A stretch of DNA of 64,000 nucleotides from Mobula hypostoma (GCF_963921235.1 NC_086110.1:9610001-9674000); one strand, 5' to 3'; shown: positions 3,601 to 52,114, counted from the stretch's first letter. Notes: generated by a model from the letters alone, not told the origin. Program-made: numbers and translations.

Positions 3601-3830
3601 TCTTCACACAGAGAGTGGTGGGAGTATGGAATGAGCTGCCAGACGAGGTGGTAAATGAGGGTTCTTTTTTAACATTTAAGAATAAATTGGACAGATACAT
3701 GGATGGGAGGTGTATGGAGGGATATGGTCCGTGTGCAGGTCAGTGGGACTAGGCAGAAAATGGTTCGGCACAGCCAAGAAGTGCCAAAAGGCCTGACTGT
3801 GCTGCAGTTTCTATGGTTTCTATGGTTTCT
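607..3830 (+). mobile_element. CR1 LINE: ORF1 esterase-like tail plus frameshifted ORF2 (APE endonuclease + RT)
   Basis: ORF1 tail (DGLHMNNRGTNIL); EN motifs YFNARSI, ISETWL, GDFNFP, SDHN; RT motifs [32 protein letters not shown] split across 5-6 ORFs; ends in (ttctatgg)n. Confidence 0.93.
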
Positions 3831-22688: not shown

Positions 22689-24256
22689 TAGTTCATCTTG
22701 CCATTACTAAAACATTACTGAAGTAAATAAAAAAACACAGCAGCAGATAAACAGTAAGGCAATATTCACGACCAGTTTTTTTTTCATTTTGAATTTTTCT
22801 TTGGTGATGAGGTCGGAAATTGGTGTTGGGTTTGGAGACTCAGCATTCAAGTCAAATCGAATTTTGGAAACTCAGAAGCTGACTGGTTTCTCCTCAAGAA
22901 ATTTGAAGCTCTTCGTAAACATAATGCATAACTGACTGTTGTGTGTATGCATTAAACGAGAAAAGGACAATATTAGTCAAGTTCTTACTCTTCTAAACAA
23001 GAGCATCATTAGTAAGTTTTCGAATACATGCATGAAAACGAGATATACTTGGCTTGGGGCGGGGTGGGGTGGTCAGCAGTTGATTCAAAGTACCAAAATG
23101 AGTCATGAAGCTTCCTGCAGCATTACAGGCTTCATGATTCTCCATACGCCGCGGGGAGATATGATACTTCGAAGTCATAATACAACTGGACTCTCCAATC
23201 ATTTGCCAGGTTAAAGTGTCAAGTAGAGTTATCCCACTCAGTGTTGGTATCACCGCAAGTTCTGAACGATGGTAAGAGAGTCAAACTCCACAGGTTAAAA
23301 ATGAGTAGGTATGAACAATTTGTATGATACTGTAAATAAACAGATTTTTTTTTAGGTGTTCAATTTGAAGATATTTGACTGCAGCGATACTAGTAATATG
23401 GCAGGACTGAAAGAGTAAATTAATGTCATTATTCGTACACACATAACCTTAAATATTCTAAAACTGTTTTAGTGACATTGTAAATAACCACATTTGCCGA
23501 GCACGTCCAATAGCTCGAAAAGAACGATACTCTTGCCGTACAAGGAGAGAAGTGAAAGTTCACTCAATTCACTGATATGCAGGATTGTCGAGTATGGAGA
23601 TAAGGGGAGATGGAGCAGGCTATGCCTGTCGTCTCTTGAGTTTGCAATAATGCGAATTGGTTTTATTCACATGAGCAGAATACAATGGAAACTTTTTAGA
23701 ACCTAGGGGAGTTAGCACGTGGAACTCGAATTGACAGTTCAAATATATGAAGCTAGCCATTCAGAACAGAAAAGAGAACAATATTGCTGTCATCTAGTGG
23801 ATAGTGAATCCATGATATTAATCGAGCAGAGCAATTGAGTATAGGAACTGCAGAGGACGACGCAATTTTACATCTAGAGTAATAAGGTGAGGTTTTCCTT
23901 AGTAGTGAAATAGAACTTCATTGATTGGCGGAGTAGACAAGAACAAAAATTACCGATTGCTCTTCCTGTCACGTATATTTCTGAGTTGACTTGTTATTGG
24001 CGTGTTCTAAGTACTTATCAAAAACGGACTGTCTGCAGCTATAATTCTGTGGCTAGCTTGACCTTACTTTAGAATAAACAACTTCAGTTTCTCCCATTTG
24101 TTTGTGTGTCTGCAGCCCAGCATATTCTGTATTCCACCGGTTCTTTCTTCCAGTCAATGTCAAGGTCGCATAAGACAACTCGTCATTTGAATTTTCTTGT
24201 ACTGTCTGTAAACATAACAAAAATAATGTTAGATAGTTGTTTACGCTCTGTGTATG

Positions 24257-24439
24257 TTACTGCTCGCCTTCCATGACAATCATTTCTTCAGCCGTTTCAA
24301 TCACTATCGCTTTCGCTGACTTATTACATAGCCTCACCTGACCAAATGCGATTTTTTCACGATCGCCTTTTCGTCCTGGTGTATTCTTAAATCTCCTGAA
24401 GTCTACGGCGGAGTAACAAGCTATCGGAGATTCCGTTTT
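24257..24439 (-). CDS. IgSF receptor copy 1: last coding exon, cytoplasmic tail with ITIM-like motifs
   Basis: Acceptor ctgtgcag; KTESPIACYSAVDFRRFKNTPGRKGDREKIAFGQVRL...EGEQ*; YxxV motif plus Y-to-F degenerate IAFGQV; candidate AATAAA at 23667-23662. A possible donor cag|gtgagg lies within the exon. Confidence 0.6.
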   Translation of the reverse strand, partial: KTESPIACYSAVDFRRFKNTPGRKGDREKIAFGQVRLCNKSAKAIVIETAEEMIVMEGEQ

Positions 24440-24774
24440 CTGCACAGTTTGGGACGAACAATTGTTATTTGGCTACTTAGCTTAATTTGTTCAGTATTAT
24501 TGTCAAATGTTAAATAGATTAACCTAAATTTGAGATATAGATTAATATACGTATTTATACACATAAAACTACGAATGTGAAGGCATTGTAGCCATTAAAT
24601 TAAACATGTGACTATTGGCCTTAAATGAAAGGTTTTAAAAGCCGGACAGCTTCAAATACATAAAAAAATAAAATTATTCTACTAAATTAAAAAAAAATGA
24701 CAACAGTTATCAAGGTACATTGACAAAATAAGAGATAACTTAGCTTACGCCATTTAAGTCCATTGGGTGAAATG

Positions 24775-26360
24775 TATTTCCAGAAAAGTTGAGATATTTT
24801 CCAAAATGCAATAAAAACAAAAATCTGTGATATGTTAATTCACGTGAACCTTTATATAACTGAAAAAAGTACAAAAAAAGATTTTCAATAGTTTTACTGA
24901 CCAATTTAATTGTATTTTGTAAACATACACAAATTTAGAATTTGATGGCTGCAACACACTCAACAAAAGCTGGGGGACAGAGGCATGTTTACCATTATGT
25001 TACATCACCTTTCCTTCTAATAACACTTTTTAATCGTTTTGGAACTGAGGATACTAATTATAGTAGATTTGCAATTGGAAATTTTGTCCATTCTTGCTTG
25101 ATATAAGACTTCAGCTGCTCAACTGTCCGTGATCTCCGTTGTCTGATTCTCCTCTTCATGATGCGCCATACATTTTCAATAGGAGATAGATCTGGACTGG
25201 CAGCAGGCCAGTCAAGCACACGCACTCTGTTTCTACAAAGCCACGCTGTTGTAGCCCGTGCAGAATGTGGTCTGGCATTGTCCTGCTGAAATAAGCATGG
25301 ACGTCCGGGAAGAGACGTCGCCTTGACGGCAACATAGGTCTCTCTAAAATCCTAATATACGCCTCAGAGTCAATGGTACCTTCACATACATGCATCTCAC
25401 CCATGCCATGGGCACTGATGCACCCCTATACCATCACAGATGGTGGCTTTTGCACCTTTCGCTCATAACAATCTGGATGGTCGTTTTCATCTTTGGCACG
25501 GATAACTCGAAGTCTGTTTTTTCCGAAAACTAGCTGAAATGTGGACTCATCTGACCATAGCACACGGTTCCACAGTCTTTCGATCCGTCTGAGATGAGCT
25601 CCGGCACAGAGAACTCACCGGCGTTTCTGCATAGAGTTGATGTATGGTTTCCTCCTTGCGTAACACAGTTTCAAGTTACATTTCTGAATGCAGAGACGGA
25701 CTGTGTGGAGTGACAATGGTTTTCCGAAGTACTCCCGAGCCCAGGTGCCTATAATTGTCACAGCAGCATGACGGTCTCTTAAGCAGTGCCGCGCGAGCGC
25801 TCGAAGATCACGCACATTCAACAGTGGTTTCCGACCTTGCCCTTTACGCACTGAGATGTCTCTGAATTCTCTGAATCTTTTCACAATATTATCTACTGTA
25901 GATGTTGAAAGACCTAAATTCTCTGCAATCTTGCAATGAGAAATGTTCCTTTTAAACTGACTAACAATTCTCTCACGAATTTTGGCACAAAGGTGTGAGC
26001 CACGACCCATCCTTGCTTGCAAAGACTGAGCCTTTGATGGACACTACTTTTATACCCAGTCATGATACCTCACCTGCTACCAATTGGCCTGCTTAATGTG
26101 GAGTCTTCCAAACTGGTGTTACTTGAATATTCCGTGAACTTTTCAATCGTATTTTAACTCTGTCCCAACTTTTGTTGAGTGTGTTGCAGCCATCAAATTC
26201 TAAATTTGTGTATGTTTACAAAATACAATTAAGTTGGTCAGTAAAACTATTGAAAATCTTTTCTTTGTTAAATAAAGGTTCACGTGAATTAACGTATCAC
26301 AGATTTTTGTTTTTATTGCAATTTGGAAAATATCCCGACTTTTCTGGAAATGGGGTTTTA
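24775..26360 (-). mobile_element. Second Tc1 copy of the same family, in an intron of the receptor gene
   Basis: Same TIRs and transposase N-terminus (MGRGSHLCAKIRERIVSQF) as 8598-10181, opposite orientation, frameshifted. Confidence 0.94.
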
Positions 26361-26454
26361 CATACAAATAAATTAGTGCCAAATACATGCCTTATCACTA
26401 GTTGAATCGTTTATTCTGACTGGCTAAATACGTAACTATACAAGCATAAACAGT

Positions 26455-29400
26455 TAGAAGCATAGAAAAATAGAAAAACTATAGCACAGTATTGGCCCAA
26501 CGACCCACTATGCTGTGCCGAACATGTACTTACTTTAGAAATTACGTAGGGTTACACATAGCCCTCTATTTTTCTCAGCTTATCCTGGAGTCTCTTAAAA
26601 GACCCTATCGTATCCTCATCCACCACCATCACCGGCAGCCCATTCCACGCACTCACCACTCTCTGCCAAAAAACTTACCCCTGACATCTCCTCTGTACCT
26701 ACTTCCAAGCACTTTAAAACTGTGCCCTCTCGTGATAGCCATTTCAGCCCTGGGAAAAAGCAAGGCCAAGTTCACTCAACCCATTCACTCATTGAGCCAT
26801 GCTCCCTAATCCATGCAACATCCTTGTAAATCTCATCTGCACCCTTTCTATATTTTCCATATGCTTCCTGTAGTGAGGTGACCAGAACTGAGCACAATTT
26901 CCAAATGGTGTCTGACCAGGATCGATATATCTGTAACATTACCTCTCGGCTCTTAAACTCAATCCCATGATTGATGAAGGCCAATGCACTCTATGCCTTC
27001 GTAACCAGAGAGTCAACCCGCGCTGCATGCTTTGAGTGTCCTATGGACTCGGACCCCATATCACTCTGATCCTCCACACTGCACAATACTGCCATCATAT
27101 TTAACCTACCAAAATGAACCATTTCGTACTTATCTGGGTTGAACTCCATCTGTCACTTCTCAGCCCAGTTTTGCATCCTCTCGATGTCCTGCTGCAACCT
27201 CTGACAGCCCAAACCTGACACTACCCACAACACCCCCAACCTTTGTGTCATCAGTAAATTTACTAACCCATCCCTCCTCTTCCTCATCCAGGTCATGTAT
27301 AAAAATCACGAATGGAAGGGGCCCCAGAACAGATTCCTGAGGCACACCACTGGTCACCAAACACTATGCAGAATATGACCGATCTACAACCACTCCTTGC
27401 CTTTCGTGGGCAAGCCAGTTCTGGATCCACAAAGCAAAGTCGCCTTGGATCCCATGCCTCCTTAATTTCTCAATAAATCTTACATGGGGTACCTTAACAA
27501 ATGCATTACTGAAATCCATATACACTACATTTACCTCTCTACCTTCATCAACGTGTTTAGTCACATCCTCAAAAAATTCAATCAGGCACGTAAGGCACGA
27601 TCTGCCTTTGACAAAGTAATGCTGCCTATTCCGAATCATATTTTGCCTCTTCAAATGGTCGTAAATCCTGCCTCTCATGATTTTTTCCGTCAACTTACGA
27701 GCCACTGAAGTAAAATTGTCATGGGGGGGAGGGGCGCTGGTGGCGGACCCAAATGCAAGACACAGACACTGAAGTACTAGGAAAAGGACTTGACAAGCGA
27801 GCTGGGACAAGAACACCAACTTGGGCTAGGACATTGGCTAGGCAAGCGGGACCAGGACAAGGAACTGGGAAGTAGGAGCCTGGGCTTGGACCCCAAGCCG
27901 GAGACTGGACAAGGATCCAGAACCTGGGTCTTGATTCGGGCTCGGATCCCAGAAGTAGGGAAGGACATGACGTGGCTACAGGACTGGACATGTCTTAGGT
28001 TCTTCATGGCCTGGGTTCTTCGACGCAAGGACATTTTGAGGCTTGGGTTCTTCGAGGCGAGTACGTGACAAGGCTTCAGTTCGGAATCCGAGCCAGAGAC
28101 AAGACAATGACCGAGAACCTGGGTCTTGACTCGGGCTCGGACTCCGGGACTAAGCAAAGACATGACGTGGTCTTGGGAGACAGGATTGGCGAAGCTACAG
28201 GACAGAATGAGAGACTCCTAGACAAGACGAAGGAACTCCAATTCAGAACGAGGGATCTCCAGCACAGGATGAAGCACATGGACAGGACGAGAACACGAAG
28301 CCTTGACTTGGTACTCAGGAACAGCCGAGCCTTGGTCTTGGGACAACAGAAACCTCGGAACCTTGGATTTGCAACGACAGGAACGCAGACCACAGAGTCG
28401 TGGTCTTAGGGAGGACAGGAACACAGAGCCTTGGTCTAGAGCACGGGAACATGGAGCCTTGGACTTGAGAGACAGGAACACAAGGACATGGAACACAGAG
28501 CCGGGACCCCTCCATGGGAACAGGACATAGGGCCGGGACTCACACACAGAATGCTGAACACGACGAGACGGTTCCCAACATTAGGTAGTGGTAAACGGCC
28601 GGACCTACCTAGCGAAGGCGTGGATACAGAGACAGTTCCAGCCTAACGATAGACAGTTCTTTATCTTGACACAGCAAGGCTCCGGTCTCGCTCCAATGGT
28701 TGAATTTGATAAGGTTGCAGGCAAGGCTCCAGACACAGGTTGCAAGCAAGGCTTCAGAAGGAAGAGGAAGGGAAGGGAACAGTCCAGCCTTAGGGTAACG
28801 GCAAAGACGGCCTGACTTACCCCACGGAGGCGAGGACGGGATACTGACGAGATAAACCAGCAACCACACTCGAACCCAGGGCCACTTATATTCCCAACCT
28901 CATGACGAGTATCAGGTGCCTATGATTAAGCCCAACTGGTACAAGGGACAGCCGAAAAACCCGGAGTCCGGAGCCCACGGACCGGACCATGAACCGGAAT
29001 ACTGACTTCACGGACCGGACTATGATAAAGATTCACTGGTCTATAATTTCCTGGTCTATCTCTACCTCCATTCTTGAATAAGAGAAGACCATCTGCAATC
29101 CTCCAATCCTGCGGAACCTTTCCCATTCCCACTGATGATGCAAAGATCATTGCCAGAGATTCAGCAATCCCCTCCCTCGCCTCCCACAGTAGTCTGGGGT
29201 ACATCTCGTCTGGTCCCGGAGACTTATCAATCTTGATGCTTTCCAACAGCTCCAGCACATTTTCTTTCTTAATTTCTATATGTTCAAGCTTTACAATCTG
29301 CTCTAAGTCATCCCTATAACTACCAAGATCCCTTCCGTAGGGAATACCGAAGAAAGTATTTATTAAGTACCTCAGCTATCTCCTCCGGTTCCATATACAC

Positions 29401-29620
29401 TTTTCCACTATCACACTTGATTGGTCTTATTCTCTCACATCTTATCCTCTTGCTCTTCACATACTTGTAGAATGCCTTGTGGTTTTCTTTTATCTATGGC
29501 CCCTTCTGGCTCTCTGAATTTCATTCTGAAGCTCTTCATGCTAGCCTTATAATCTTCTAGATCTCTATCATTACTTAGTATTTTTTGAACCTTTTGTAAG
29601 CTTTTCTTTTCATCTTGACT
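26455..29620 (-). mobile_element. Decayed CR1 LINE (intronic), interrupted by a solo LTR
   Basis: RT remnants [28 protein letters not shown]; tail repeat at about 26455-26480. Confidence 0.88.
27717..29027 (-). mobile_element. Solo LTR-like element with internal tandem repeats
   Basis: Ends TGTCA...TGATA (degenerate TG..CA); inserted into CR1 motif PVNL|TSV; flanks aaaat/aagat; repeated gagccttggtcttgggac units. Confidence 0.7.
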
Positions 29621-29726
29621 GGATTAATAACTATTGGTTATAATGTGAATATCGTTAATTCTGTCCATATTACATCATCCATTGAACGGCCACAATATAC
29701 GGTACTAAATGAATGCATGAACGAAC

Positions 29727-29764
29727 CTCACGTCGATTCGCTTCCGTAACGCATTCCTCTTTAC
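29727..29764 (-). CDS. IgSF receptor copy 1: probable short cytoplasmic exon (G-KEECVTEANRRE)
   Basis: Acceptor tttcgtttcag; donor GAG|GTTCGT; phase 1 to 0 links TM exon to tail exon; same 38-nt exon conserved in copy 2 (GNEECLREGNRRE). An alternative donor gtgagg lies 5 nt earlier. Confidence 0.5.
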
Positions 29765-29899
29765 CTGAAACGAAATATGACATGAAAATGTAGCACCATC
29801 GACTCGAGTTGTTAACTCAGTGATTACAAAGATATTTATAATAATACACTAATTTCAGCATCTGTGGAATCTTGTGCTAAGGATAATTATATTTATGAA

Positions 29900-30200
29900 A
29901 CATGTCACAGAGGCGCAATAGGAAGTGCCTAGAATTCCGGCGATCGGTTCAGTATTCACTACAGAATAGGATCTTGGTGATTGTAGGGATGAATTACAGT
30001 GGACCTGTAATATCAGATGCTACTACGTCATCCAAGTAATGACATGTGTTTCTCTAAGATGCACCACAGTCCTCCCGCATCCATACTCATACAGGTTAGG
30101 CGACTTTAAATTTCCTGAAGTGTGTGCATTTCGCAGGACATAGTGAGCATAACGTTACAGGAAAATAAATTGGAGCGTCGGATCAATAGGAATCTTGCGA
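29900..30200 (+). mobile_element. Old tRNA-derived SINE remnant (HE1/V-SINE-like); counterpart at about 46840-47060
   Basis: cacagtg(g)cgca...ttgcctcac head and cctccc(a/g)catc...ggttagg body, by recall of family consensus. Confidence 0.5.
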
Positions 30201-30774
30201 GGGGAGGCGGAAAACACAACAGGCCGAAGATTCGATACCTATATGTGTATCTGCAGATTCTGCTTACTCCAATCCGGAAATGAAAGTAATCGCTCGGGAT
30301 ACCAATGGAATACAAGGGTAGAGAATGGAACAGCTATTTCATGTCACAGTCTTCCATGCACGACTGAGTATTTTGGTTGAGCATTTTATGAGGTATCTCA
30401 TAAATAACGTGGGTTCCAAACACTCCGCCGCAGGTTGCACCAAATCTCTCGGCTGAAAGAGTAAATGGGTTTTACTATCTTTGATGTAATCCTTACAGAA
30501 TCTTCCATCGTTTCCGCAGTCCGTCGGAGCTCATGCTGAATTTCTGGTTCTTATTTCGGTGGCTTCGAAACAGTACCAGTTAATGTTCTCTTTTCAATTT
30601 CTGGCGGAGAATAGAATGACTGGCTTCTATTAAATGTCTGAAATACGTGATACAGACTTTGGAGGCGAAAAAGAGTACTGAAGCTCCACTGAAATCGCTG
30701 AAATGTTTTTCCTCTTGTTTGTTGTTCTTTTTTTGTCCTGACTGTAGATTTGAAAGATGTTCTTTAAAACTTAC

Positions 30775-30888
30775 CCTTATTTTCCTGCTTTCGGTACCAC
30801 GTTCCAATGATGATTATCAGTAGTAGAAACGCCAGTCCACCCACCGCACAACCGGGAACCCAAGAGGAACGGGTTTTGCCAGAGGAAC
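30775..30888 (-). CDS. IgSF receptor copy 1: transmembrane exon
   Basis: ctccag| GSSGKTRSSWVPGCAVGGLAFLLLIIIIGTWYRKQENK |gtaagt; 114 nt, phase 1-1; not in the ORF track frame. Confidence 0.88.
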
Positions 30889-31451
30889 CTGGAGATTGTA
30901 AGAATATACGTTGTGGAAGCTGCGAAGTAATTACATAATTCACGTTTTTGGGAGTAGGTGAAGGATGGCTGCTGGTGCTTGTGCTGGTGACGGCGTTGGG
31001 GTGTGTGAATAAGCGGATGAACCCGCAGCACAGATTAGGGAAGAAATAAGAGAGAAAAAGTAAATAAAATGCATGGCGACTTTAGTTTTTTAGCAAAATA
31101 AACCCAGACATTGTTCTTCCATCGGACAGCTGAATTATGTTGAATTGATCTGAGACTCCCTGTAACTCAAGGCTGCTCAACAAACATGATAGGAGTATTG
31201 TGGGTGGGGTTGGGAAGAGTCTGAAACAATTTTCCATTCAGAGATTGATAATATATTAAATCATAGCTTGTTATGTTATAAACCCAGCCACTCCCCCCCC
31301 CCTACACACACACACACACACACCACTGCGACACAATCATATCGAAGATGGCAAACCCGCCTTTCATTTTGAACGGATAGAAATTTAGAAATATGTATTG
31401 GAAATTTCAACAAGTGATAGTACTAATAACCCGCGCAACGGTGGGAATCTT

Positions 31452-31456
31452 CCTGC

Positions 31457-31502
<46 letters not shown>
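31452..31502. repeat. (TG)n microsatellite; shorter (CA)n at about 31304-31322
   Basis: Directly visible. Confidence 0.9.
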
Positions 31503-31503
<1 letters not shown>

Positions 31504-31922
31504 GTTTGTATGTCTGTGAAACATGATGGAAGTTCGAGGTCAAGCCGAAGCTTCTTCAAACACTGCAACTGAAAGGAACGGAATCACTGGTATAGGATGG
31601 AATTCTGGTGATCAACCAGTGCACAGAAAAAAAAACATCAAATCACATGGGTGGAAACGCAAATTATTAAAATAGATGCACTTGTTTCTCTAAGTTGTAA
31701 AATACAGAAAAGAGTTTGAATGTAAATGACAGTCACGGGACAATGCGCTCATTGTTTACTGCCTTGCAACACATGGAATTCGATATTAAATAAAAGCCTT
31801 CAATACTACGTTGTACTTAACATTTCCAATTCAATTAAGTTGAATTTTCCTCGCGACCAGTAACAAACAGTGATAGTATATTGTATGTATATTTGATGTA
31901 TTAACAAGAAATGGCCTCGTAC

Positions 31923-32225
31923 CTTGGTTAGATTTGGAAATAGAATGGACTGCTACCGCTGAAATATTGAGGGAGACATGAGACACCGAACAGGTATAAT
32001 TTGTGTCGTTCTGGACCGGCTGTGTCTCCTTCAAGTTGCTCGAAACCACATAAAGTCCGTCGTTGTCCTTCCTTACCTTGGTGTGTATGCCTAATGCTAT
32101 TTCAATGCCATTTTTATACCAAGTAAGCGAGAAATTCTTGGGATAAAAGGCAGATGTTTCACACACGATAATGAAAGTTGTAGCTGAATTTCTTTTCGCG
32201 GAAATCTTCAGTGGCGTTGGAACTG
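31923..32225 (-). CDS. IgSF receptor copy 1: Ig C1-set domain exon
   Basis: ccgcag|...IVCETSAFYPKNFSLTWYKNG...GLYVVSSNL...YTCSVSHVSL...|gtacga; 303 nt, phase 1-1; C1 hallmarks C-x4-FYP, W, YxCxVxH. Confidence 0.93.
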
Positions 32226-33224
32226 CTGCGGAACAGATAGTGGAAAACATATTAAATGATGTTGCGATAGTGAAATACTTCCTGTTAATTAAGCACAAGT
32301 CTATTAATTCTGAAGGTTGCATTTGAAGGAATGATATTAATAGATTCTATATCAGTTATTAATGCCCGATTCATGGTCATACTACACGACAGCATTTGCT
32401 GTTTCTCACTATCTCAACGATAATGACGCCACTTCGGATATTCATATTGTGGTTTTCCGAAGAAAACCCTCAAAGAGTCAGTAGCTCAACGAAACAGAAT
32501 TTGATTCTCATGGACAGTGAACACTGAACTGCAGTACAATGATGTGAAAATGAGTAAGTCAGCTGCTACATCATAAAATTCCCTGTCGTGGTACAGAAGT
32601 GGGTGAAAATGATATATTGTTTCCAAATACGTCGCAGCATCATACCATTTGCAAACTATGAAATTTGTTGAAAGAGTGCTCGCTTTAGTTTTGAGTTTTA
32701 CACGCTCCAGTTCACCATGCCGAGTAATTCCCTTTCAAATCCGTTACATTTAATCTATACTTCTCAACGACTTCTCATCAATAAATAATACATTAATCAG
32801 TAAGAGATTCGATTACAGTGGTAGAGGCTTTGGAACTTGGGCCTTAATCCAGACAAGTTTCATGTAATGCCTATTGGGAAGTCATAAGGTGGCAGGAAAC
32901 ATACAATAAATGCTGGGGCGCTAAGAAATGTTTTCAACGGTCAAACCTTTAGACTCAAATTCCTGTAAAGTGGCAACAGAGGATGGCGCAGGAAGTTTAC
33001 TTTTATAGGTAAACAGGTAGAATATAAAATATGTAATAGTGCATGAAATATTATCTCAGACCGGTTAAACAACATTCGGATTATTCGTAACAGTCTGGTT
33101 TGCACAATATAAGAACTATGTACTTTGCCGGAGGGAGTGGGGAACACTCGCAGTTTTTTTTTTCTTGAATGGGGAGGAATGTTGTTCTGAAGTCAGATGA
33201 GGTCATTTCAAACCGTGTGTTTGA

Positions 33225-34170
33225 AACATAGAGACATAGAAAACCTACAGAACAATACGGGCCCTTCGGCCCACAAAATTGTGCCGAACATGTCCCGACC
33301 TTAGAAATTACAAGGCTTACCTATAGCCCTCTATTTTTCTAAGCTCTATCCAAAAGTCCCTTAAAAGTCCCTATCGTATCCGCCTCCACCACCGATGCCG
33401 GTAGCCTATTCCACGCCCTCCCCACCCTCTGCGTAAAATCCTTACCCCTGACATCTCCTCTGTACCTACTTCCCAGCACCTTAAACCTGTGTCCACTTGT
33501 GGCAACCATTTCAGCCGTGGGAAAAAGCCTTTGACTATCCACACGATCAATGCCTCTCATCATCTTATACACTCTATCAGGTCACCTCTCATCCTCCGTC
33601 GCTCCAAGGAGAAAAGGCCGAGTTCACTCAACCTATTCTCATAAAGCATGCTCCCCAATCCAGGCAACATCCTTGTAAATCTCCTCTGCACCCTTTGTAT
33701 GGTTTCCACATCCTTCCTATAGTAAGGCAACCGGAACTGAGCTCAGTACTCCAAGTGGGGTCTGACCAGGGTCCTATATAGCTGCAACATTACCTCTCGG
33801 CTCCAAAATTCCATTCCACAATTGATGAAAGCCAATCTTAACCACAGAGTCAACATGCGCAGCTGATTTGAACGTCCTATGGACTCGGACCCCAAGATCC
33901 ATCTGATCCTCCAAACTGCCGAGAGTCTTACCATTAATATTATATTCTGCCATCATATTGACCTACCAAAATGCACCAGTCACACTTATCTGGGTTGAAC
34001 TCCATCTGCCACTTCTCAGCCCAGTTTTGCTTGCTGTCAATATCCTGCTGTAGCCTGTGACCACCCTCCACACTATCCACAACACCTCCAACCTTTGTGT
34101 CATCAGCAAACGTAATAACCCATCCCTCCACTTCGTCATCCAGGTCATTTATAAAAATTACGAAGAGTAA
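33225..34170 (-). mobile_element. CR1 3' fragment in the V-C1 intron
   Basis: FADDTKVGG, RPHLEY remnants; 3'UTR with tail at about 33225-33245. Confidence 0.85.
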
Positions 34171-34719
34171 GATTTTGAAACATGTCATTTTTGAATACAT
34201 CTTTCCGGACTTAAGCAAGTAGACTGTCTAATTTACTTTAGGATTTATGATTTGATTTTATAACATCCTACGCTCGTGTTTATCATTGCCTAATTACAAG
34301 TTCCAAAAAACAGGAACGTTTATCGTGTAACTAATTTATCCAGGAAATTATATCCATTGGGTTTCACATAAGCCCTTTCAAAAAACAAACAGCGGAGGGA
34401 AAAATAAAGTGCCACAAGGGAACCGATCAGAGGCTAAACAAATTTTGAAATTTGTGATATTTTGAAGCACTGTCTTCAAAAAATGGAGGTGCTGAGAGAT
34501 TTCAGTAAGGAATTGCAAAGTTTTCATGCTTGATTACCCTTCGTTGCCGCCACTACTATTGGAAGGATTATATCCTTATCTGGCAACCCTTTACGATTTA
34601 ATCTACTATAATCCAACGATTCTCCAAATAGTATCATTCTTTGGAATTTACAGACAGATATTTCTGTATCACAGATCCATGGAAAGGCGTAGAGGAATAA
34701 GGATTAAAACAGTAACAGT

Positions 34720-35455
34720 ACAAAGTAAATGGCAGGATATTTGGTAGTGTGGAGGAGCAGAGGGATCTCGGGGTACATGTCCACAGATCCCTGAAAGTTG
34801 CCTCACAGGTGGATAGGGTAGTTAGGAAAGTTTATGATGTGTTAGCTTTCATAAGTCGAGGGATAGAGTTTAAGAGTCGCGATGTAATGATGCAGCTCTA
34901 TAAAACTCTGGTTAGGCCACACTTGGAGTATTGTGTCCAGTTCTGGTCACATCACTATAGGATGGATGTGGAAGCATTGGAAAGGGTACAGAGGAGATTT
35001 ACCAGGATGCTGCCTGGTTTAGAAAGTATGCATTATGATCAGAGATTAAGGGAGCTAGGGCTTTACTTTTGGAGAGAGGGAGGATGAGAGGAGACATGAT
35101 AGAGGTGTACAAGATAATAAGAGGAATAGATAGAGTGGAAAGCCAGCGGCTCTTCCCCAGGGCACCACTGCTCAATACAAGAGGACATGGTTTTAAGGTA
35201 AGGGGTCGGAAGTTCAAGGGGGATAATAGAGGAAGGTTTTTTACTCAGAGAGTGGTTGGTGCGTGGAATGCACTGTCTGAGTCAGTGGTGGAGGTAGATA
35301 CACTAGTGAAGTTTAAGAGACTACTAGACAGGTATATGGAAGAATCTAAGGTGGGGGCTTATATGGGAGGCAGGGTTTGAGGGTCGGCACAACATTGTGG
35401 GCCGAAGGGCCTGTACTATGCTGTACTATTCTATGTTCTATGTTCTATGTTCTAA
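34720..35455 (+). mobile_element. CR1 3' fragment in the V-C1 intron
   Basis: RDLGVHVHRSLK...RPHLEYCVQFW; (ctatgtt)n tail. Confidence 0.88.
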
Positions 35456-35689
35456 GTAACGTGACATCTCTGGTTGCTAATAATAGAGAACAGACTGCAG
35501 ATTATGACATATTTGACATATTTTGTGGATCTGGTGATTCCTTGCAACCCTTCAGACCCTCTCGTATTCGCAAACAGTGGATAGAGCGATGGAGAATGAA
35601 TGATAAAGGACATCTTCATAAGCGTCTGTTTCTTGGCGTATATTCTTTATAGTTAATAGATAATTTATTCGCCTATTAATTTAACTTAC

Positions 35690-36010
35690 CATTCACTTTT
35701 AGAAGTGAACCAGTTCCATTTCTTGCAGACAGTCCTTTGCGGGTCACTGAACAGAAATACAGTCCAGAATCTTGGATCATTACTTGTTGCAACTCAAAGT
35801 ACCAAGTTCTTGTACCTCTCAGACCAGAACTTTTTCTGTTGCCGATGCCTGTCCGTTGGTAATTATTCTCGCCCTGTTTCCACCAATGCACTTTCGTCCA
35901 GGATTGATCCTGAGAAATGGGAAATAAGCAGTAGAACGTGACGTTCCCTCCTTTGGATACAACCGCTTCTTTGGGCAATTGAGTTACACTGAACGTACTC
36001 TGATCCGCAG
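35690..36010 (-). CDS. IgSF receptor copy 1: Ig V-set domain exon with J-like G strand
   Basis: ttttccttgacag|...FSVTQLP...VTFYC...VHWWKQG...DSGLYFCSV...NGTGSLLKVN|gtaagt; 321 nt, phase 1-1. Confidence 0.93.
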
Positions 36011-38171
36011 CTGTCAAGGAAAAGTTAGGTTGGTTAAATTATCAATGAAATGAATTTTTTAATAAATGTGACCGACTGTACACCTGAATCACAGTTAGAC
36101 TCAATATCATGGAAGCTAACCAGAGATTGATTTATAAATTATGGAACGCAGAAAATGAATAAAGCTATACCTATGTAAATGTTCCAACTGACTGCCAGGA
36201 GGAGCAGCATACTTGACATCCTGCCGAACAGATCAAGCTAATGAGTCTGTAGATGCACGACTTTAATCGGAGAGTGGGGGAGTGGTTTGCATTCTATAAA
36301 GGATGATTCATATCCTGTCTTTGAATGGGGTGGTGTAGTTACAGCGATCGATTCGTAAGTCAGTGACTTACCAGAGTACGGGTAATAATACATGTAATAA
36401 TTCGATTTTTTGTTGCTACTCTCTTTACTAGCACACATGTTGTTTCACTGATGATGTTAGATCTGGAAATAGTGTAAATGTCACAAGGTTTTAAAACTTC
36501 TTTAATCGTTATTTTAGCATGCCTTTATGGATCTACAATACCAAATTTTCACAACCTTTGCACATTTAAGGACTTTTATAATAATTTTGAATATTAATAG
36601 TGAATATTTAGGGTGCATTGACGAGTGAACAAATACTGAAAATGCTGGTTCTTAAGCCGAGCGACTCAGTCGGCGATCATGAATGTGTGGTCAGCGTTGA
36701 ACAGACAATTTTTCTGGACCACATCGAGTTTGAAAAGAAGGATTGTTGGAACCAAAGAGAAACGTTAGGATAGATGCGTCCCCGGGGTTGTGAAGTTCAG
36801 TTTCCTAGCAGAGAATTGGAAGGTGGCATAGAATAAGTTGTTGCGTTGTTCAAGAAAGGTAATAGGAACGCTCCTGTGATTATAGATCGGTGAGTCTTAT
36901 TTGAGTGGTGGGAAAAGCATTGGAGAGGATTCTTAGGGACACGATTTATTAGAATTTGGAGAAACAAAACACTTTCTCTCCTTTCCGATATACACAGTTA
37001 TTCCTACACTCACTCAAACCTCACTAATCTATTTCCTTCACCTCCTTTACGCATTCCTTTTTCCATGTACTTTATTGAATGGCTCCATTTTCTCATCCTA
37101 TCTATCTTCACCCACGACCCGGACATCACTCTATGCTCTACTTCCTCTCATGACCTTCAGCCATTGTCGTTTCCATCAATCACCTCTATTAACCACCACG
37201 ATTAATGCAGCATTGTTTCTTCATCAGTACTCAATTGTGACTGGGGACGAATCGTGATAACACAGTAAGATCTATGACATTGAAGACAACAAACTGTTCT
37301 AGAGTATACCCACTATAACGAAAGCTCCTCCAAATATTTATGGATCGACAGGGGAAGCATCCATAGAACCAGACTGCAGAGAACAAATTCCCGGGTGCCG
37401 TTTGCTGTCCTGTACTCAAGAGCGCACTATCTGGTATATATCCCTGCAAAGTGAAACATCAGCAACAACCTATCGGAGATTCAGGTGGCTCCCAGTTTGC
37501 CATTTTCTTTCGTTGTTAATCTTTTTAAAAATTATGTGCAATATATAAACAATGCCAGAATATTGCTTTATTCCCTGAAGCAGATAGCGTTCTTTCAGTT
37601 ACGCGTTATTTAAGAGCTCATTATTCATAGTCGATTACTGAACCAAATTCCAAGGTATTCAGTAACAAGTTGTGCTTAATGAGTAATACGATATTTTGCA
37701 GGAAAAGATGGATATATTCAAGCAAAATAATGGTTACAGATTGGATCATATTTGATTAGTACACATAAATATTTTCTCTAATTACAGTGCAGTTTTATAC
37801 AGGAAAAGCAGCTTGGGAATTTCAGATCATGTCTTTTGTGCAAGTCTAATAACGTGCTAAGCATTATCAAATGAGGGGAAAACATTAACTGAAAGCCTGT
37901 AGTCTGATTTTAACGAAGTGCTATTCTTTCATTCCTAATTCCAATGAACAGAGTAATATTTAGGACAAGATGTTGTTCTGTAGCTATAATTGTATTCCAC
38001 TGAAATGCGCTGGCATTAGCGTAATTGTAGTTTAAATGAAATGAAATAGATTTTGGTTTATGTGGGCGTATCAGAATGGTATTAACTGAAGTGCCAAAGG
38101 TGTTTGAATTGTCGTGCAATGATAACCTCATATATTCTTGGGTAACGCTCGCAGGAAAGATTGGATTACTC

Positions 38172-42950: not shown

Positions 42951-42956
42951 TTTTAG

Positions 42957-45410: not shown

Positions 45411-46656
45411 ACAGAAACAAGAGCTTATACAGAGGTAGCTCTACCAAATGATACCATGAGTCGAATCATTCTCAAAATACGGAGCCTCTGCTTGCACCTA
45501 ACTGGGCATCTGCTTTAAGGATAAAACTAACACAGAATTCCTGATCCTATCAAAATCAACTGAATAAACTTAAATTGAAAACACCCGAAAACTGTATTAG
45601 AAAGAGCGAGTTGCTTGAGGAAAGCACAAGAAACTCTTAAACCATAAATAACTGTTGTTAAACTACAATTAACCAATTCAGGTGCTCTAAAAATCTCAGA
45701 GCCCAATGCTCTGATGCCCTGCCAGGCCTGAAGTAGTTACTACAGGATCCTCCTCCCTATAGCTGGCCCCTGATGGCCCAGAACGACCTGAAAACTCGAG
45801 ATCCAGGGATGACCCGAGATATCTGGGAACTTGAGAGGGAGGCATGGGGAACTCGAGAGGTAGGGAGCCTTGGGGATCCAGAAAGACTGCGAGACCTGGG
45901 AACCCCAACAGACTGAGAGATCAGAAAACCTCGAGTAAGATCAAGAAGCCTTGGGTGGGACCGAGAGGGAGACTTGGGCGTCCTAGAGATGGGGAGGACG
46001 TTGAAAAACCCTGAACACATTGAATAAGCCTTGGAAACAATCGGAAGCATAAAAACCTTGGGAACATAGAAAAGTCCTTGGGAAAACTTGAAAACATGAA
46101 ACTTGAAACATAGAGAAGGAAACTTTTCAAATCTTACTCACAGTAATTTACCTTTCACAATTTTTTTCCAGCGGGAATTTGGATATGCTGTCAATTTTAC
46201 AGATCAAGGCAGCAGTATTATTATGATATGTTAAACGGGTTTACCCAAAATAGAGATACGGACTAACTTATGCAATAATATACTGAATACTCCGTACGTT
46301 AAGGCATTGCGTCAACCAAGCAAGCTTTTAAACATGTCAATATTGGTCTTGAATGACTGTTTTAAAATGCACGGCAGCTTCCGAAACGAAATGATTCTAT
46401 TGAATGCAAAAAAAAGTAGTTATCTGAGTACATTTTCAAGACGACATACAAATGTAATTTAATTTACGTAATTTCAGTACATACAATAAAATGCATAAAT
46501 AAATTAATTGATGACAAATACTTCTCTGAACATGATTTGAATCATTCATTGAGACTGGCCAACTGCATAATTTGTATCGTTAATTCTGTCCAGATCACAC
46601 TATCCATTGAATGGCCACAATTTACGGCGATAAATGAATGCACGTACTGTATAAAC

Positions 46657-49600
46657 CTCACGACGATTCCCTTCCCTAAGACATTCTTCATTACCTGGAA
46701 CGAAGTACAATAACACGAAAATGCAGCACCATTGACTGAATTGTTAATGAAATAGTTATAAAGATGTTGATAGTAACACACACATTGCAGAATCTACATA
46801 ATTTCTTGCCCGGAAGATATTTATAGACAGATTTTTGTCTAACGGGTCACAGTGACGCAATAGTAATACCATTGCCTCACATTCGAGTAATCACATGTGT
46901 TCCTCTAAGGTGCTCTAGAATCCTCCCACATCGATAGTCATATAAGTTAGGTGAAGTGGTAACACTAAAAATCCTGGAATGTGTTATTGACAGGAGAATC
47001 GTGGCCGTACCTTGTTACAGGGATATAAATTGGAGCGTAGGATCAATAAGCATCCTCTGATATCAAGCTGAAAACATAATGCACCGAATGTATTAGTATC
47101 TATTTGAGTAACTACAAAATTTGATAAAAATTCCAAACATCTTTTGTTTCAACCAATTTCATTTTCTTGTTCCGGAAATGAAAATAATTGTTTGTGATAC
47201 CAACGGAATATAGGGCTAGAAAATGGGAATAGATTATTAACATCACGTGATAGTCTTCCATTCACGACGCAGTAAGTTCTCTCTGTTTATAGTTCTAATG
47301 TCACATATCCGACATTTGCATTTATGGTTAATCTGTTTGGATCTAGGATGGCTTTTTTTCACTTTTGGTTGAGTATTTTATGAGGTATCTGATTAACTAA
47401 TGTCGGTTTCGTATAGTATGCGGCAGGTTGGCAAAATGTGCTTTACTGCAGTTGGTGTGCTCCTTTCATCATATTGCCTTGGTTCCATCTGCTGCCATGT
47501 GCGAGGACTCACGCTGAATTTCAAAATGATCCTCTACGTTTTGGTATGGGTCGAAGGAGTCACAGGACACGGTCTAAGTCCTCTTCAATTTCTGGCCGAG
47601 AATAAAATGCCCAGTTTCTGTTAAATATCTGAAATACGTGGCCCAGGCATTGAAAGCCGCACAGATTATTTAAGCTCCAGTACGATTGTGCTGTCCTGGA
47701 AGAGGTCGTTGAAATAGTTTTCGCTTTGTCCATCTTGTGGATTTAGAAGATGCTCTTTAAATTTTACCCTTACTTCCCTGCTTTCGGCACCGCGTCCAAA
47801 GGATGATCGTCAGCACCAGAATCGCAAGTCCTCCAAATGCACAAACGGTCACTCAAGTGGAAAGGCATTTGCCAGAGGAATCTGAGGTTAGGAAAACATA
47901 CGTCATGGAAGCTGTGAAGTCAATACATAAGTCTATTTTTTTGAGAGGAAGTACGGTAAAAGGTGGCTGCTGGTGTTTATGGCATGCTGTGTGTGAATAA
48001 GTGGATGTCAGCAACACAGAGAAACGTAAAAATAAGAGAAGAACTTAAAAAACAGAGCGTCTTGTTCAGCAAAATATACCCTATGTTATTCTAATATTGG
48101 TTAGAAGAATTATGTTGAATTGATCTGAGGTTTGCTGTAGCTCAAGTTTGCTTGAATGCACGTTATATGCATATGATCGGTGGACAGGAAATGATCTAAT
48201 GTACCTTAAGCCACCTTCCCATTACGAGATTGATAATTTATTAACCTATAGGTTGTAGTGTCATAAGCTCTCTTCTTCACAATCTTTCATTTCATTTAGA
48301 AATATGTATTGGAAATTTCCAGAAGTGAGAGCAGAAGTGACCTGTCTGCACACCGGTAGGAGTCTATCTCTGCGTGTGTGTGTGTGTGTACGCGCGCGTG
48401 CTTGAGAGAATCTGGAGGTAAAACAGAAACTTCTTCAAAGTTCAACTGAAAGGACGATTTCACTGGTAAAGAATGATATCGTGTGGTTTTAATATGTTAC
48501 GCAGAAGAAACACACGGGAGGAAACGCAAATTATTAAAATATATAAACTTGTTTCCCAATTTTGTAGAACATATCAAAGAATTTAGATGTAAACTACAGG
48601 CACAGAGCAATGCTTTTGCTGCTGTCGGTTGTGCAACACGTGGAATTCCATGTTAAATAAAAGCCCTTCAACAATACGCAGTATTTAAAATTTTCAATGA
48701 AATAAGGTGAATTTTCCTCGAGGTTACTAACAAATGGTGATATTATTTTGTATATGTATTCGAGAAAATAACAAGAAATGGTATCTTACCTGGTTCGATT
48801 TGGAAATAGAATAGATGGCTACCGCTGAAGCAATGAGGGAGACTTGAGATACCAAACAGGTATAATTTGTGTCGATCTGAGGTGGCTGCATCTCTGTCAA
48901 TTTGCTCAAAATTCATAAAGGACCTCCATGTTCTTCCATATCATGGTCAGTATACCCAATCTATTTCTATGCCATTTTAATACCAGCTAACTGAGCGGTC
49001 CTTGAGTAAAAGGCAGCTGTTTCACACACGAGAATGAAAGTTGTAGCTGTAGTATTTTTCGCAAAAATCTTCAGTGGAGTTGGAACAGTTACAGAAGAGA
49101 AAATGCTAATGGGCGTTTCGATATTGAAACATTTTCCTTAAGTTACCCTTATTCCATTAACTATGATGGTTGCATTTCGGAATCTAATTAAACGAATCAC
49201 CCGAGAGAGAGAGACTCCATATTTGTTTGACACAGATAGCGACGAGTAAACTGAGTTGAATTGAATTGAATTGACTTTATTACTCACATCTTTCATAACG
49301 AGTAAAAATCTTTACGTTATATCTCCGTCTAAATGTGCAATATATAATTTATAGTAATTTATAATAAATAGTATGTACAATAGGATAGTCAATATAACAT
49401 AGAAATACAGGTGTGTCAGCGTGAATTAATCAGTTTGATGGCCTGGTGGAAGAAGCTGTCCCGGAGCCTGTTGGTACTGGTTTTAATGCTGCGGTACCGT
49501 TTCCCCGATGGTGGCAGCTGGAACAGTTTATGGTTGGGGTGACTCGGGTCCCCAATGATCCTCCTGGGCCCTTTTTACCCACCTGTCTGTAAGTGTCCTG

Positions 49601-50603
49601 AATAATGAGAAGTTCACATCTACAGATGCGTTGGGCTGTCCATATCACTCTCTACAGAGTCTTGCGATTGAGAGAAGTATAGTTGCCATACCAGGCAGTA
49701 ATGCAGCCAGTCAGGATGCTCTCACATGTGCCGCTATAGAAAGGTCTTAGGATTTGGGGGACAATGCCAAATTTCTAAAGCCACCTGATGTGAAAGAGGC
49801 GCCTTTTTCACCACACAGCCGTAATGTACAGGCCAATTATTTGAAAAAGAGTAAATTATTGCTTTATAATAAAATAGTGTATGCAGAAGTGGGTAAAAAT
49901 AATATATCGTTTTCAAATTCGCCAACTAGTAGCACCATATCATTCGCAAACTACAGTATGTCTTTTATTGACGGAATGCTCGGTTCAGTTTTGAGATTTC
50001 CGCGCTCCGGTACACAATCCCAAGTAGCTGACGTGTCTTTTAAATCCTTTACACGCTGCCTTTTAAATCATTTTTGTTAATTCTATACTTCTATTGGAAT
50101 ATCAAACAGTAGATTAAACTGTCAGAGATTAGATTACAGAGGTAGGAGTATTGCAAATTGAGGTTTAATAGGGCAGTACCAAATAATGCGTTTTGGGAAT
50201 TCTTCAGGTGATAGGAATCATACAATAAATGCTGGGGTGCTACGTGGTGCTGTTCAGCACGGAAAGCTTGGTGACTCAAGCTCTTGTAAAGCGGCATCAC
50301 GCTGTACTTAACATTTTCAATTAATTCATGTGCATATTCCTAATAAGGTGCATATTTTCTCAAATCTTTATATATATATACACACATAGTATATTATCAC
50401 TAACAAATAATGCAACTCTGTCAAGTTGCTTGAAACTTCCGTGTGCGTCCTTATCCTGGTCTCTATGTCCAATCCTATTTCGATGCCATTTTTACACCAA
50501 ATAAGTGAGAGGTCCTTGGGATAAAAGGTTGTTGTTTCACACACGAGAATGAAAGTTGCAGCTGTAGTATTTGTTGCGAAAATATCCAATGGAGTTGGAG
50601 CAG
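46657..50603 (-). pseudogene. IgSF receptor copy 2 (decayed paralog): truncated C1 (50603-about 50420), C1 (49088-48790), TM (47881-47768), short exon (46694-46657)
   Basis: Exons and introns align with copy 1; the 49088 C1 has acceptor AG changed to AA and a 1-nt deletion; TM exon has in-frame TGA (47855-47853); no V exon or tail exon found. Confidence 0.85.
49255..49745 (-). mobile_element. Rex/Babar-like LINE 3' fragment between the two C1 exons of copy 2
   Basis: (aattg)n tail at about 49255-49275; TTRFRNSFFHQA-type sequence in reverse. Confidence 0.7.
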
Positions 50604-52114
50604 CTACGGAACAGAAAATGGGAAAAATGTTAAATGATTTTCATTAAATTAACCTCGGGTCCATTAATTAAGATGGTAAAATTTGAAGAAATGTTGTTGT
50701 TGTTATTATTATTATTATTATTATTAACTATATCAGCTTGTAATTCACGATCCAGATTCAAATTAGACGACGGCATTTGCTGTGTTTCACGAACTCAGCG
50801 ATAATAACGCGACTTGAAATATTCATATTGCATTTTTTTTGGAGTCCAGAGATTTAACCAAATCACCTCGAGAGAGGGTAACACGAAGAAACTCTAGATT
50901 TGTTTCACTCGGATAGTGACGAGTAAACTACAGTTTAATTATCTGAAAATGAGAAAGTAAGCTGCTTTATAATTAAATATCCTGGACAGAAGTGCCTGAA
51001 AGGAATATATCGTTTTCAATTTCGCGGATTGCAGCACCATGGCAATTACAAATTACAGTATGTCATTTATTGGATGAGTGTGTGGTTCAACTTTGAATTT
51101 TCCATGCTCCAGTACACAATGTCGAGTAGCTGACAGGCATTGTATTACACACTGCCTTTTAAATTCTTTACATTTATTCTATATTTCTTTGGGAATGTTA
51201 AACAGTAAAGTAAGCAGTCAGTGATTAGATTACAGAGGTAGAATAATTGTAAATTGGGGTTTTAAAGAGCAAGTGGCATGTAAGTATCTGGGAAGTCGTC
51301 AAGGTGCGGGAATCATAATAAATGCTGGGATGCTACGGGATGCTGTTTGGGATTCATGTTCCTGTAAAATGGCAACAAAAGATGTTGCAAAGTGCTTACT
51401 TTCATGGGTTATCAGATAAATTATAGAAGTTGGAATGTTATATGGGAATTTTTGCTTCAGATTGGTTAAACAGTATTTGCGTTAATCGAGACAGTCTGCT
51501 GTTTATGATATAGGAAGGATGTATTATGCCAGCAGGGGCGGGGAAGACTCAGCAAGCCGTTTTCTTGGATTGGGTGGATTTTGGTTATGAACAAGGATGG
51601 TATCGCCTGAGCTTCTTCCTCCGAACCAATGAGGTTAAGATTGACCTATGTGTCGAAGCCTGGAAAGACTTAATAGTTGCAACGTGGTAGGAAAATTAGA
51701 AGCAAGCCGTCGTATGTTTGGAAAAAGGGGAGGAATTTTCAAAAGGATTTGGGTGAGATTTGAGAGGAACTCAAAACGAATGGAGCTGGTGTAATCTGAA
51801 GCAGTTATACGATTAGGAGGCATTTGGACAGGGCTTAATAATGTAGGATGTTGATTGTAGTGGTAGTAAGATGGTGCAGATCCTCGATGTTTTAAGCACT
51901 AACTTCAAGAAATCAAAGTGCAGAGAGATCCCTACAGGAAATCGCAGAGTCTTCATGCTTCCCCACTGGGGTGTAGGGTAAAGGGCAGGACCTCCAGGGC
52001 TACGTCTCACGATTGCTACCCGTGCCCCGTGCTACTGATGCCAGAAATAGGAAGCTATACAGTGGCTAAGGAGTTGGTGTAGGAGGGAGGGCATAGGATT
52101 TTTAGATCATTGGA

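Follow-up and report, generated by a model that had tools for sequence, protein, structure and literature searches.

A 64,000-nucleotide stretch of sequence NC_086110.1 from Mobula hypostoma (GCF_963921235.1, positions 9,610,001 to 9,674,000; hereafter the window) contains a gene for a type I transmembrane receptor with one V-type and one C1-type immunoglobulin (Ig) domain and a long cytoplasmic tail bearing inhibitory motifs of the immunoreceptor tyrosine-based type (ITIMs). A preliminary description, made from the sequence alone, had placed a hidden multi-exon receptor gene of this kind between positions 24257 and 36010 of the window and had put it forward as an under-described system. The locus carries an apparently intact gene that is, for the most part, already predicted in public annotation, and the gene is one further member of a large, publicly predicted and apparently unstudied family of cartilaginous fishes.

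The gene lies on the minus strand and consists of seven coding exons with AG/GT splice sites throughout (Table 1), each internal exon being preceded by an acceptor AG behind a pyrimidine tract and followed by a GT donor. Joined, the exons give a coding sequence of 1080 nt that encodes 359 amino acids and in which the only stop is the terminal one; none of the seven shows a defect of splice site, reading frame or stop. The exons from the leader to the transmembrane segment all end in phase 1, and the 38-nt exon that comes next switches the phase from 1 to 0. The leader is of the split kind, with an intron of 160 bp between it and the V exon. The V domain has both canonical cysteines (in TFYC and LYFC), the tryptophan (in HWWKQGE) and the motif QDSGLYFC, and its J-like G strand, NGTGSLLKV, is germline-joined inside the V exon, while the C1 domain carries the motifs IIVC...LTWYKNG...YTCSVSH. 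The core of the transmembrane segment, AVGGLAFLLLIIIIGTWY, is devoid of charge, has a conserved cysteine at the outer membrane boundary, where a short stalk ends, and is backed by the basic stop-transfer sequence RKQENK.

Behind the transmembrane segment extends a tail of about 98 residues, which opens with RKQENK at residue 257, ends at residue 359 and holds four tyrosines: Y284 (CYSAV), Y321 (LSYATL), Y337 (TEYAGL) and Y353 (VVYSKV). Scored by the definitions of PMC12151841, LSYATL and VVYSKV are canonical ITIMs, and TEYAGL, with its leucine at +3, resembles an immunoreceptor tyrosine-based switch motif (ITSM). A single C1 exon stands between the V and transmembrane exons, and tblastn found no second intact C1 within the gene. 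A candidate second V exon at 42944-42956 was rejected, as it amounts to a 13-nt match to the end of the V exon, adjoins a retroelement open reading frame (ORF) and returned no V domain by tblastn. No flanking single-copy genes were found within the 64-kb window.

Much of the preliminary description is confirmed by this model. The V, C1 and transmembrane exons are bounded by AG/GT, in phase 1 and free of stops on the minus strand, with Pfam V-set and C1-set matches; the introns are indeed filled with transposons, among them a Tc1/mariner copy (HTH and DDE_3 matches) and reverse-transcriptase fragments of long interspersed nuclear elements (LINEs); and the product is, as proposed, a type I receptor whose V and C1 domains, one of each, are followed by an uncharged transmembrane segment and a tail with tyrosine motifs. 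The 38-nt exon and the tail exon that had been suggested to complete the frame are both real, but the exon with the YxxV motif is not the last one. The earlier tail had been read through the donor at 24337 to a stop at 24257, whereas the exon splices from 24337 to 24205-24053, and the true last exon, with LSYATL, TEYAGL and VVYSKV, was thereby overlooked. The proposed range of the gene accordingly encloses the exons that were described, but misses the leader (36219-36171) and the last coding exon (24205-24053), which lie outside it.

Table 1 Coding exons of the receptor gene, mobile elements in its introns and the decayed paralogue upstream; positions are counted from the first nucleotide of the window
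Feature	Position	Strand	Description
Leader exon, coding part	36171..36219	-	49 nt; ATG at 36219; MSSMLLLLAVSWNIYI + 1 nt; GT donor; phase 1
V exon	35690..36010	-	321 nt; phase 1 at both ends; Pfam V-set, E 6e-7
C1 exon	31923..32225	-	303 nt; phase 1 at both ends; Pfam C1-set, E 1.5e-12
Stalk and transmembrane exon	30775..30888	-	114 nt; GSSGKTRSSWVPGC-AVGGLAFLLLIIIIGTWY-RKQENK
38-nt cytoplasmic exon	29727..29764	-	tttcag/GT...GAG/gttcgt; encodes (G)KEECVTEANRRE; included in RefSeq P0075
Cytoplasmic exon cy1	24338..24439	-	102 nt; phase 0; KTESPIACYSAVDF...IAFGQ; GT donor at 24337
Last coding exon cy2	24053..24205	-	153 nt including the stop; three tail tyrosines
Tc1/mariner-type DNA transposon copy, intron 5	24776..26358	.	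HTH_23, HTH_Tnp_Tc3_2 and DDE_3 matches
LINE reverse-transcriptase fragments, intron 5	26455..29625	.	RVT_1 match; related copies elsewhere in the window
LINE 3' fragments, intron 2 (V-C1)	33223..35454	.	RVT_1 match
Decayed paralogue	46567..51591	-	about 70% identical to, and colinear with, 29640-33191; 11 kb upstream of the gene
Decayed paralogue, 38-nt exon	46657-46694	-	intact
Decayed paralogue, transmembrane exon	47769-47879	-	interrupted by a stop
Decayed paralogue, C1 exon	48790-49086	-	AG acceptor lost; frameshifts and stops
Decayed paralogue, truncated second C1 copy	50416-50598	-	duplicate

The V exon, used as query in an exhaustive HMMER search, recovered RefSeq entry XP_062923447.1 (P0075), named 'tyrosine-protein phosphatase non-receptor type substrate 1-like [Mobula hypostoma]', which corresponds to residues 94-359 of our model at 100% identity and has the same splice junctions from the V exon through the C1, transmembrane, 38-nt and cy1 exons to cy2. 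Because the two are identical over the C-terminal 266 residues, the exon model stands far beyond chance. The gene can therefore be called neither hidden nor an under-described system, given that RefSeq models most of it as SIRP-alpha-like and that dozens of predicted paralogues and orthologues can be found in public databases. An internal methionine in the V exon serves as the start of the RefSeq model, which leaves out the whole leader and 76 residues at the beginning of V. This missing part is supported by the match to protein P0175 of the Atlantic stingray Hypanus sabinus, which is identical to the Mobula protein at 15/16 positions of the leader, 93/107 of V and 86/101 of C1. Protein P0179 of the red stingray Hemitrygon extends the comparison to the cytoplasmic side, with identities of 90/101 in C1, 32/38 in the transmembrane exon, 10/13 in the 38-nt exon, 28/34 in cy1 and 45/50 in cy2, and with an identical C-terminal QTHKQMGETEVVYSKVRSS; overall the Mobula protein is 84-87% identical to the stingray proteins.

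Counterparts of the 38-nt exon occur in other family members as GNEECFTEANRSE and similar sequences. Skipping of this exon is predicted to give a frameshifted end of 17 residues without a tyrosine motif. Read-through of its donor is predicted to append EVRSCIHLVPYIVAVQ... before a stop (EVRSCIHLVPY...), and this read-through end resembles the annotated short-isoform C-termini of the Hypanus paralogue P0001 (SEVCSCVHIAPYNLVIQ). Retention of the intron behind the 38-nt exon may be a conserved route to tail-less forms of the receptor; that alternative processing yields such forms is a speculative proposal.

Both a shark member and a profile of 15 sequences, used as queries, brought up V-C1 proteins with significant full-length scores from chondrichthyans only. 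Matches to the V exon numbered 139, and a V-plus-C1 architecture is present in about 80; all 41 of the named family proteins (name look-ups, 30 representatives) belong to sharks, rays or chimaeras, and family members are carried on one chromosome per species. Neither the exhaustive V-domain search, among its V-plus-C1 matches, nor the family profile search brought up a bony-vertebrate protein. The automatic names given to these proteins conflict with one another, ranging over SIRP-alpha-like, SIRP-beta-1-like, tapasin-related-like, NCR3 ligand 1-like, Ig lambda-like and MHC class II beta-like, and our literature searches found no paper that describes the chondrichthyan V-C1 family.

The Mobula gene carries the features of this family. 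Its V domain can be aligned with 62 V domains of the family without a gap and shares their motifs TFYC, WWKxGE, QDSGxYxC and GNGTGSxLxV, and its C1 domain follows the family signature PTPLK...LVCET..FYP...LTWYKNG...YTC.VSH, in which the invariant columns (P, C, W, C and H) are all kept. The motif W..GCA.GGL.FLVL of the transmembrane exon is contained in the family consensus. In the long-tailed subtype of the family the 38-nt exon is followed by xxYAAxD, LxYATL and TEYAxLQ, and the corresponding tail motifs in Mobula, which align with the tails of sharks, rays and chimaeras, are CYSAVDF, LSYATL, TEYAGLQ and VVYSKV; the tail motifs xxYAAxD, LTYATL and TEYAELQ are recognisable from Callorhinchus to rays. 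The second family tyrosine (VYAQ) is a phenylalanine in the Mobula gene (IAFGQ), and residue 12 of the leader is a tryptophan where the orthologue and the paralogues have glycine.

In a maximum-likelihood tree of 67 V-C1 ectodomains, with branch support given by the Shimodaira-Hasegawa-like approximate likelihood ratio test (SH-aLRT), the Mobula gene is sister to Hypanus P0175 (SH-aLRT 90). The pair is nested in a clade of five stingray and devil-ray members (100), which includes the Mobula paralogue P0153, and also falls within a clade of 13 shark and ray members (99). Long members with ITIM-bearing tails and short-tailed members are intermixed over the tree, and among the short-tailed relatives are some with an arginine at the outer end of the transmembrane segment, such as Hypanus P0175.

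Several other members of the family are of note for their domain composition or position. Protein P0022 of Amblyraja radiata (493 aa) has a V-C1-C1 architecture in which the two C1 domains are near-identical, a recent exon duplication, and the model of P0150 of Scyliorhinus torazame (413 aa) is V-V-C1, with two V domains; the altered domain numbers of these two proteins mark the domain count as plastic in the family. Mobula hypostoma also has a V-C1 gene named 'tapasin-related protein-like' and annotated with five isoforms (RefSeq XP_062923438-443, the P0085 cluster). As its accession numbers directly precede those of the gene described here, it is probably a close chromosomal neighbour, one that belongs to a different, older branch of the family.

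The affiliation of the family was judged on profile scores against the PDB and on fold matches only. The family profile matched SIRP-alpha (2wng) first, with 101 bits and an E value of 6e-28 over an alignment that spans V plus C1, followed by UrIg2 (97 bits), an Ig chain (93 bits) and SIRP-gamma (87 bits); B7 proteins, B7-H6 included, were absent from the top 60 matches. When the Mobula V domain was searched alone, shark VNAR and T-cell receptor (TCR) V domains were nearest, the V domains of PD-L1 reached an E value of only about 1e-4, and no SIRP V domain was among the top 60 PDB matches. The Mobula C1 domain alone found UrIg2 first, and also Ig constant domains, SIRP-alpha and SIRP-gamma. 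Profiles restricted to V or to C1 were uninformative on affiliation, being dominated by the summed scores of multi-domain entries (titin, IgG heavy chains). A tail-only search with the six-tyrosine tail of Callorhinchus returned Callorhinchus proteins only, the motifs being too short for database-wide significance, and the search of the tail against the PDB gave only a chance match to Sel1.

Structural comparisons were made with a confident AlphaFold 2 model of the ectodomain of Hypanus P0175, the 84% identical orthologue, as a predicted monomer (predicted local distance difference test score 88.9); the orthologue was chosen because no single reference exists for the spliced Mobula protein. 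In the model, V and C form an extended unit like those of B7-H6, PD-L1 and SIRP. Among Swiss-Prot proteins it matched PD-L1, B7-H6, SIRP-beta, SIRP-alpha, TAPBPL and butyrophilins with template modelling scores of 0.68-0.75, the SIRPs having the highest structure-based identity (24%). Two independent runs of VIA-align placed B7-H6 first (Z 16.9 and 17.0; root-mean-square deviation 2.9-3.5 A over 190-193 residues; 24-25% identity), with a flat series of Z-scores of 15-16.5 below it for Rst, PD-L2, Neph1, B7-H3 and butyrophilins. A pairing geometry like that of TCR or Ig was rejected, since Ig light chains and TCR-beta match per domain only (template modelling score 0.40, root-mean-square deviation >9 A). 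Sequence thus leans towards SIRP and fold leans marginally towards B7-H6, neither of them decisively. The preliminary suggestion of a cartilaginous-fish family like SIRP or NKp30 holds in that the family turned up in chondrichthyans only and looks most like SIRP by sequence, with B7-H6 nearest by fold, but its NKp30 half fails on architecture.

Comparison with the known receptor groups places the gene close to several of them. SIRPs proper have a V-C1-C1 ectodomain of three Ig domains. The Mobula gene resembles SIRP-alpha and the other SIRPs in its N-terminal V-set domain with a J-like strand, the C1-set domain behind it, the type I transmembrane segment and the tail with several ITIM-type tyrosines, and the family resembles them further in its short-tailed forms with a basic transmembrane residue, as in SIRP-beta. 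It differs in having one C1 domain instead of two, in belonging to a large multigene family that is found here in Chondrichthyes only, and in a V domain that, taken alone, is closer to VNAR and TCR V than to SIRP V; membership in the SIRPs proper was rejected on the domain number. As to orthology, the lead of SIRP-alpha over UrIg2 in the profile search is only 4 bits, and no bony-vertebrate SIRP was among the proteins that the family searches retrieved. With B7-H6 (NCR3LG1), the B7 proteins and the butyrophilins the gene shares a two-domain V-C ectodomain, the extended geometry predicted for P0175 and a plan of phase-1 exons, and some family members have been named NCR3LG1-like automatically; it is set apart from them by profile scores that favour SIRP, UrIg2 and Ig chains, by the J-like strand and by the conserved tail of ITIM and ITSM-like motifs.

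The NKp30 receptor (NCR3) consists of a single V domain without a C domain, and has a charged (Arg) transmembrane segment for pairing with CD3-zeta or FcR-gamma. It is, like the Mobula gene, a non-rearranging receptor with a VJ-type V domain, but membership in this group was rejected on the presence of a C1 exon, the uncharged transmembrane segment and the long tail with ITIMs. TAPBPL shares the IgV-IgC1 pair and matches the P0175 model with a template modelling score of 0.70 at 23% identity; the Mobula gene differs in lacking both the N-terminal tapasin domain and a tail of the endoplasmic-reticulum type, and the automatic name 'tapasin-related protein-like' reflects the shared V-C1 unit and nothing more. 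In chicken, the putative remnants of an antigen receptor precursor (PRARP), reportedly described by Fu et al. in 2019, are said to be a non-rearranging VJ-type receptor of the immunoglobulin superfamily with an inhibitory tail; bird and bony-fish proteins are absent among the matches to the family described here. In rearranging Ig and TCR genes V and J are encoded separately and are joined by RAG at recombination signal sequences; a gene of this kind was rejected, since a single exon with a GT donor at its end encodes the V framework and the J-like strand without interruption, though no search aimed at recombination signal sequences was made. The UrIg and UrIg2 genes of elasmobranchs are non-rearranging, antigen-receptor-like VJ-C genes, UrIg2 with 9-11 C domains and with no ITIM tail described (PMC12227049). 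Their germline-joined VJ exon, split leader, adjoining C1-type domain and restriction to cartilaginous fishes are all paralleled in the Mobula gene, whereas the latter differs from UrIg2 in its one C1 domain, its inhibitory tail and a V-C elbow that is predicted to differ (root-mean-square deviation 11 A between the P0175 model and 9dmx). Membership in UrIg or UrIg2, with a VJ exon and three or more C1-type domains, was rejected for a gene with one C1 exon and an ITIM tail.

Upstream of the gene lies a decayed paralogue with an intact 38-nt exon, defective transmembrane and C1 exons and a truncated second copy of C1 (Table 1); no V or ITIM exons for it were found in the window. The ORF of the gene is clean, in contrast to that of this neighbour, which is riddled with defects. 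Such a copy, 11 kb away, attests directly to evolution by birth and death at this locus. A (GT/AC)n microsatellite occupies the same intron position in the live gene (31450-31500) and in the dead paralogue (48370-48400), and is therefore older than the duplication.

We regard the locus as likely to hold an intact member of a family, found here in cartilaginous fishes only, of non-rearranging VJ-C1 receptors of the immunoglobulin superfamily, of type I topology and with an inhibitory tail, which evolves by the birth and death of paired receptors. Exon structure, open reading frame and domain identities are direct observations, as are the orthology with stingrays and the conservation of the tail; the function is modelled on SIRP-alpha, PD-1 and further ITIM receptors. 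By this analogy, the V domain would bind a ligand carried by another cell or by a pathogen, the tyrosines of the tail would then be phosphorylated by Src-family kinases, and the tandem SH2 domains of SHP-1 or SHP-2 would dock at the ITIM and ITSM-like sites, dampening the activation of the leucocyte that bears the receptor. In SHP-1 and SHP-2 the SH2 binding sites are reported to have been conserved all the way from sharks to humans (PMC12151841). The short-tailed relatives with a transmembrane arginine suggest that the family comprises paired inhibitory and activating receptors subject to gene birth and death, a process of which the decayed upstream copy would be a casualty. Several features weigh against an intact inhibitory receptor: just two of the four tail tyrosines fit the strict ITIM consensus; TEYAGL, by virtue of its leucine at +3, is not a strict ITSM under the definition of PMC12151841; the tyrosines are spaced by 16 residues (Y321-Y337 and Y337-Y353), compared with about 24 in most of the shark and ray relatives that were inspected by eye; and the start of the RefSeq model at an internal methionine may reflect weak or absent transcript support at the 5' end. 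The phenylalanine in IAFGQ and the 16-residue spacing may tune the output of the tail.

Other explanations of the same observations have to be weighed against this reading. That the gene is a true orthologue of the bony-vertebrate SIRP-alpha, a CD47-type 'don't-eat-me' receptor, from which one C1 domain has been lost, would accord with the rank of 2wng as the best PDB match of the family profile, colinear over V plus C1, with the lead of the SIRPs in structure-based identity, with the RefSeq name and with a domain number plastic enough to have produced the duplicated C1 of Amblyraja P0022. It would also accord with the four tail tyrosines, in which xTYAxL and xEYAxxQ motifs alternate, since the tail of human SIRP-alpha is similar in this respect. 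We nevertheless hold such orthology to be unlikely in view of the single C1 domain where two are expected, the small lead of SIRP-alpha over UrIg2 (97 bits) and the Ig chain (93 bits), and a V domain that matches VNAR and TCR V while SIRP V is absent from the top 60. Bony-vertebrate proteins were not recovered by the V-domain or profile searches, the tail-only search stayed within Callorhinchus, and the many members per genome are at odds with the single conserved gene that would be expected. Still harder to credit is a ligand like B7-H6 or another B7 protein, one that displays its V-C ectodomain to NKp30-like receptors and in which the tail is secondary. NKp30 is multigene in sharks (PMC12227049), B7-H6 came out on top in both VIA-align runs and ranks high among the Swiss-Prot fold matches, and several family members bear the RefSeq name 'NCR3 ligand 1-like'; yet the flat Z-scores, obtained from the predicted monomer of an orthologue, are those of a generic extended V-C geometry, B7-H6 is missing from the top 60 sequence matches of the profile, and the J-like GxGxxLxV strand together with the conserved multi-ITIM tail indicates a signalling receptor, which makes the ligand reading very improbable.

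It could also be that the gene is a recently silenced or never-expressed copy, an intact-looking pseudogene within a birth-and-death cluster. A RefSeq model that lacks the leader and the first 76 V residues, a decayed paralogue 11 kb upstream, introns packed with transposons and the leader tryptophan at residue 12 in place of glycine would all suit a silent copy. Against this, the seven exons are free of stops, frameshifts and splice-site defects, and the dead neighbour is only about 70% identical and full of defects. Moreover, the tail exons are 82-90% identical to those of Hemitrygon, which belongs to a different ray family, and share its C-terminus; conservation of this order between ray families argues for purifying selection and not for a pseudogene, and we regard silencing as quite unlikely. 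A bolder reading of the functional gene is that the family is the surviving cartilaginous-fish lineage of an ancestral non-rearranging VJ-C1 receptor that lies behind the SIRPs and, after the invasion of RAG, the antigen receptors, and that the mode of signalling at this locus flips between species. The receptor would then be inhibitory in Mobula and Hemitrygon and would have a transmembrane arginine and a short tail in the Hypanus models, with skipping of the 38-nt exon or retention of the intron behind it as the toggle. We think this combination improbable; if true, it would provide a natural example of an orthologue that switches between brake and accelerator.

Beyond the receptor gene, the window holds further mobile elements. 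A second Tc1/mariner-type copy at 8599-10173 is 92.8% identical to the one in intron 5 (24776-26358) and has the opposite orientation, and short pieces of about 208-215 bp also match the ends of the two copies, as terminal repeats would. Copies of the LINE fragments of intron 2 recur at 17.8-19.4 kb and 7.5-8.3 kb with identities of 81-92%. On the plus strand, 3703-6693 holds an intact-looking LINE ORF2 of 996 aa with an endonuclease (Exo_endo_phos_2) and a reverse transcriptase (RVT_1, E 4.5e-33), an element that may have been active recently. Also on the plus strand, the GC-rich segment 11397-14524, which has a strong negative GC skew, holds an ORF of 934 aa followed by an overlapping ORF of 153 aa; by eye these look like a retroelement polymerase (YIDDCIG) and a Cys-rich, GIY-YIG-like endonuclease as in Penelope-like elements, and neither matched Pfam at E 1e-5.

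As the family is already in public annotation, the Mobula locus alone opens neither of the two questions on which families of this kind bear, namely the birth and death of paired inhibitory and activating receptors and the form of the non-rearranging relatives of antigen receptors in early jawed vertebrates. What is new is a corrected full-length model of 359 aa for a gene that is N-terminally shortened in RefSeq, by which the large germline-joined V-C1 receptor family of sharks, rays and chimaeras gains a well-resolved member with a dead copy adjacent to it.

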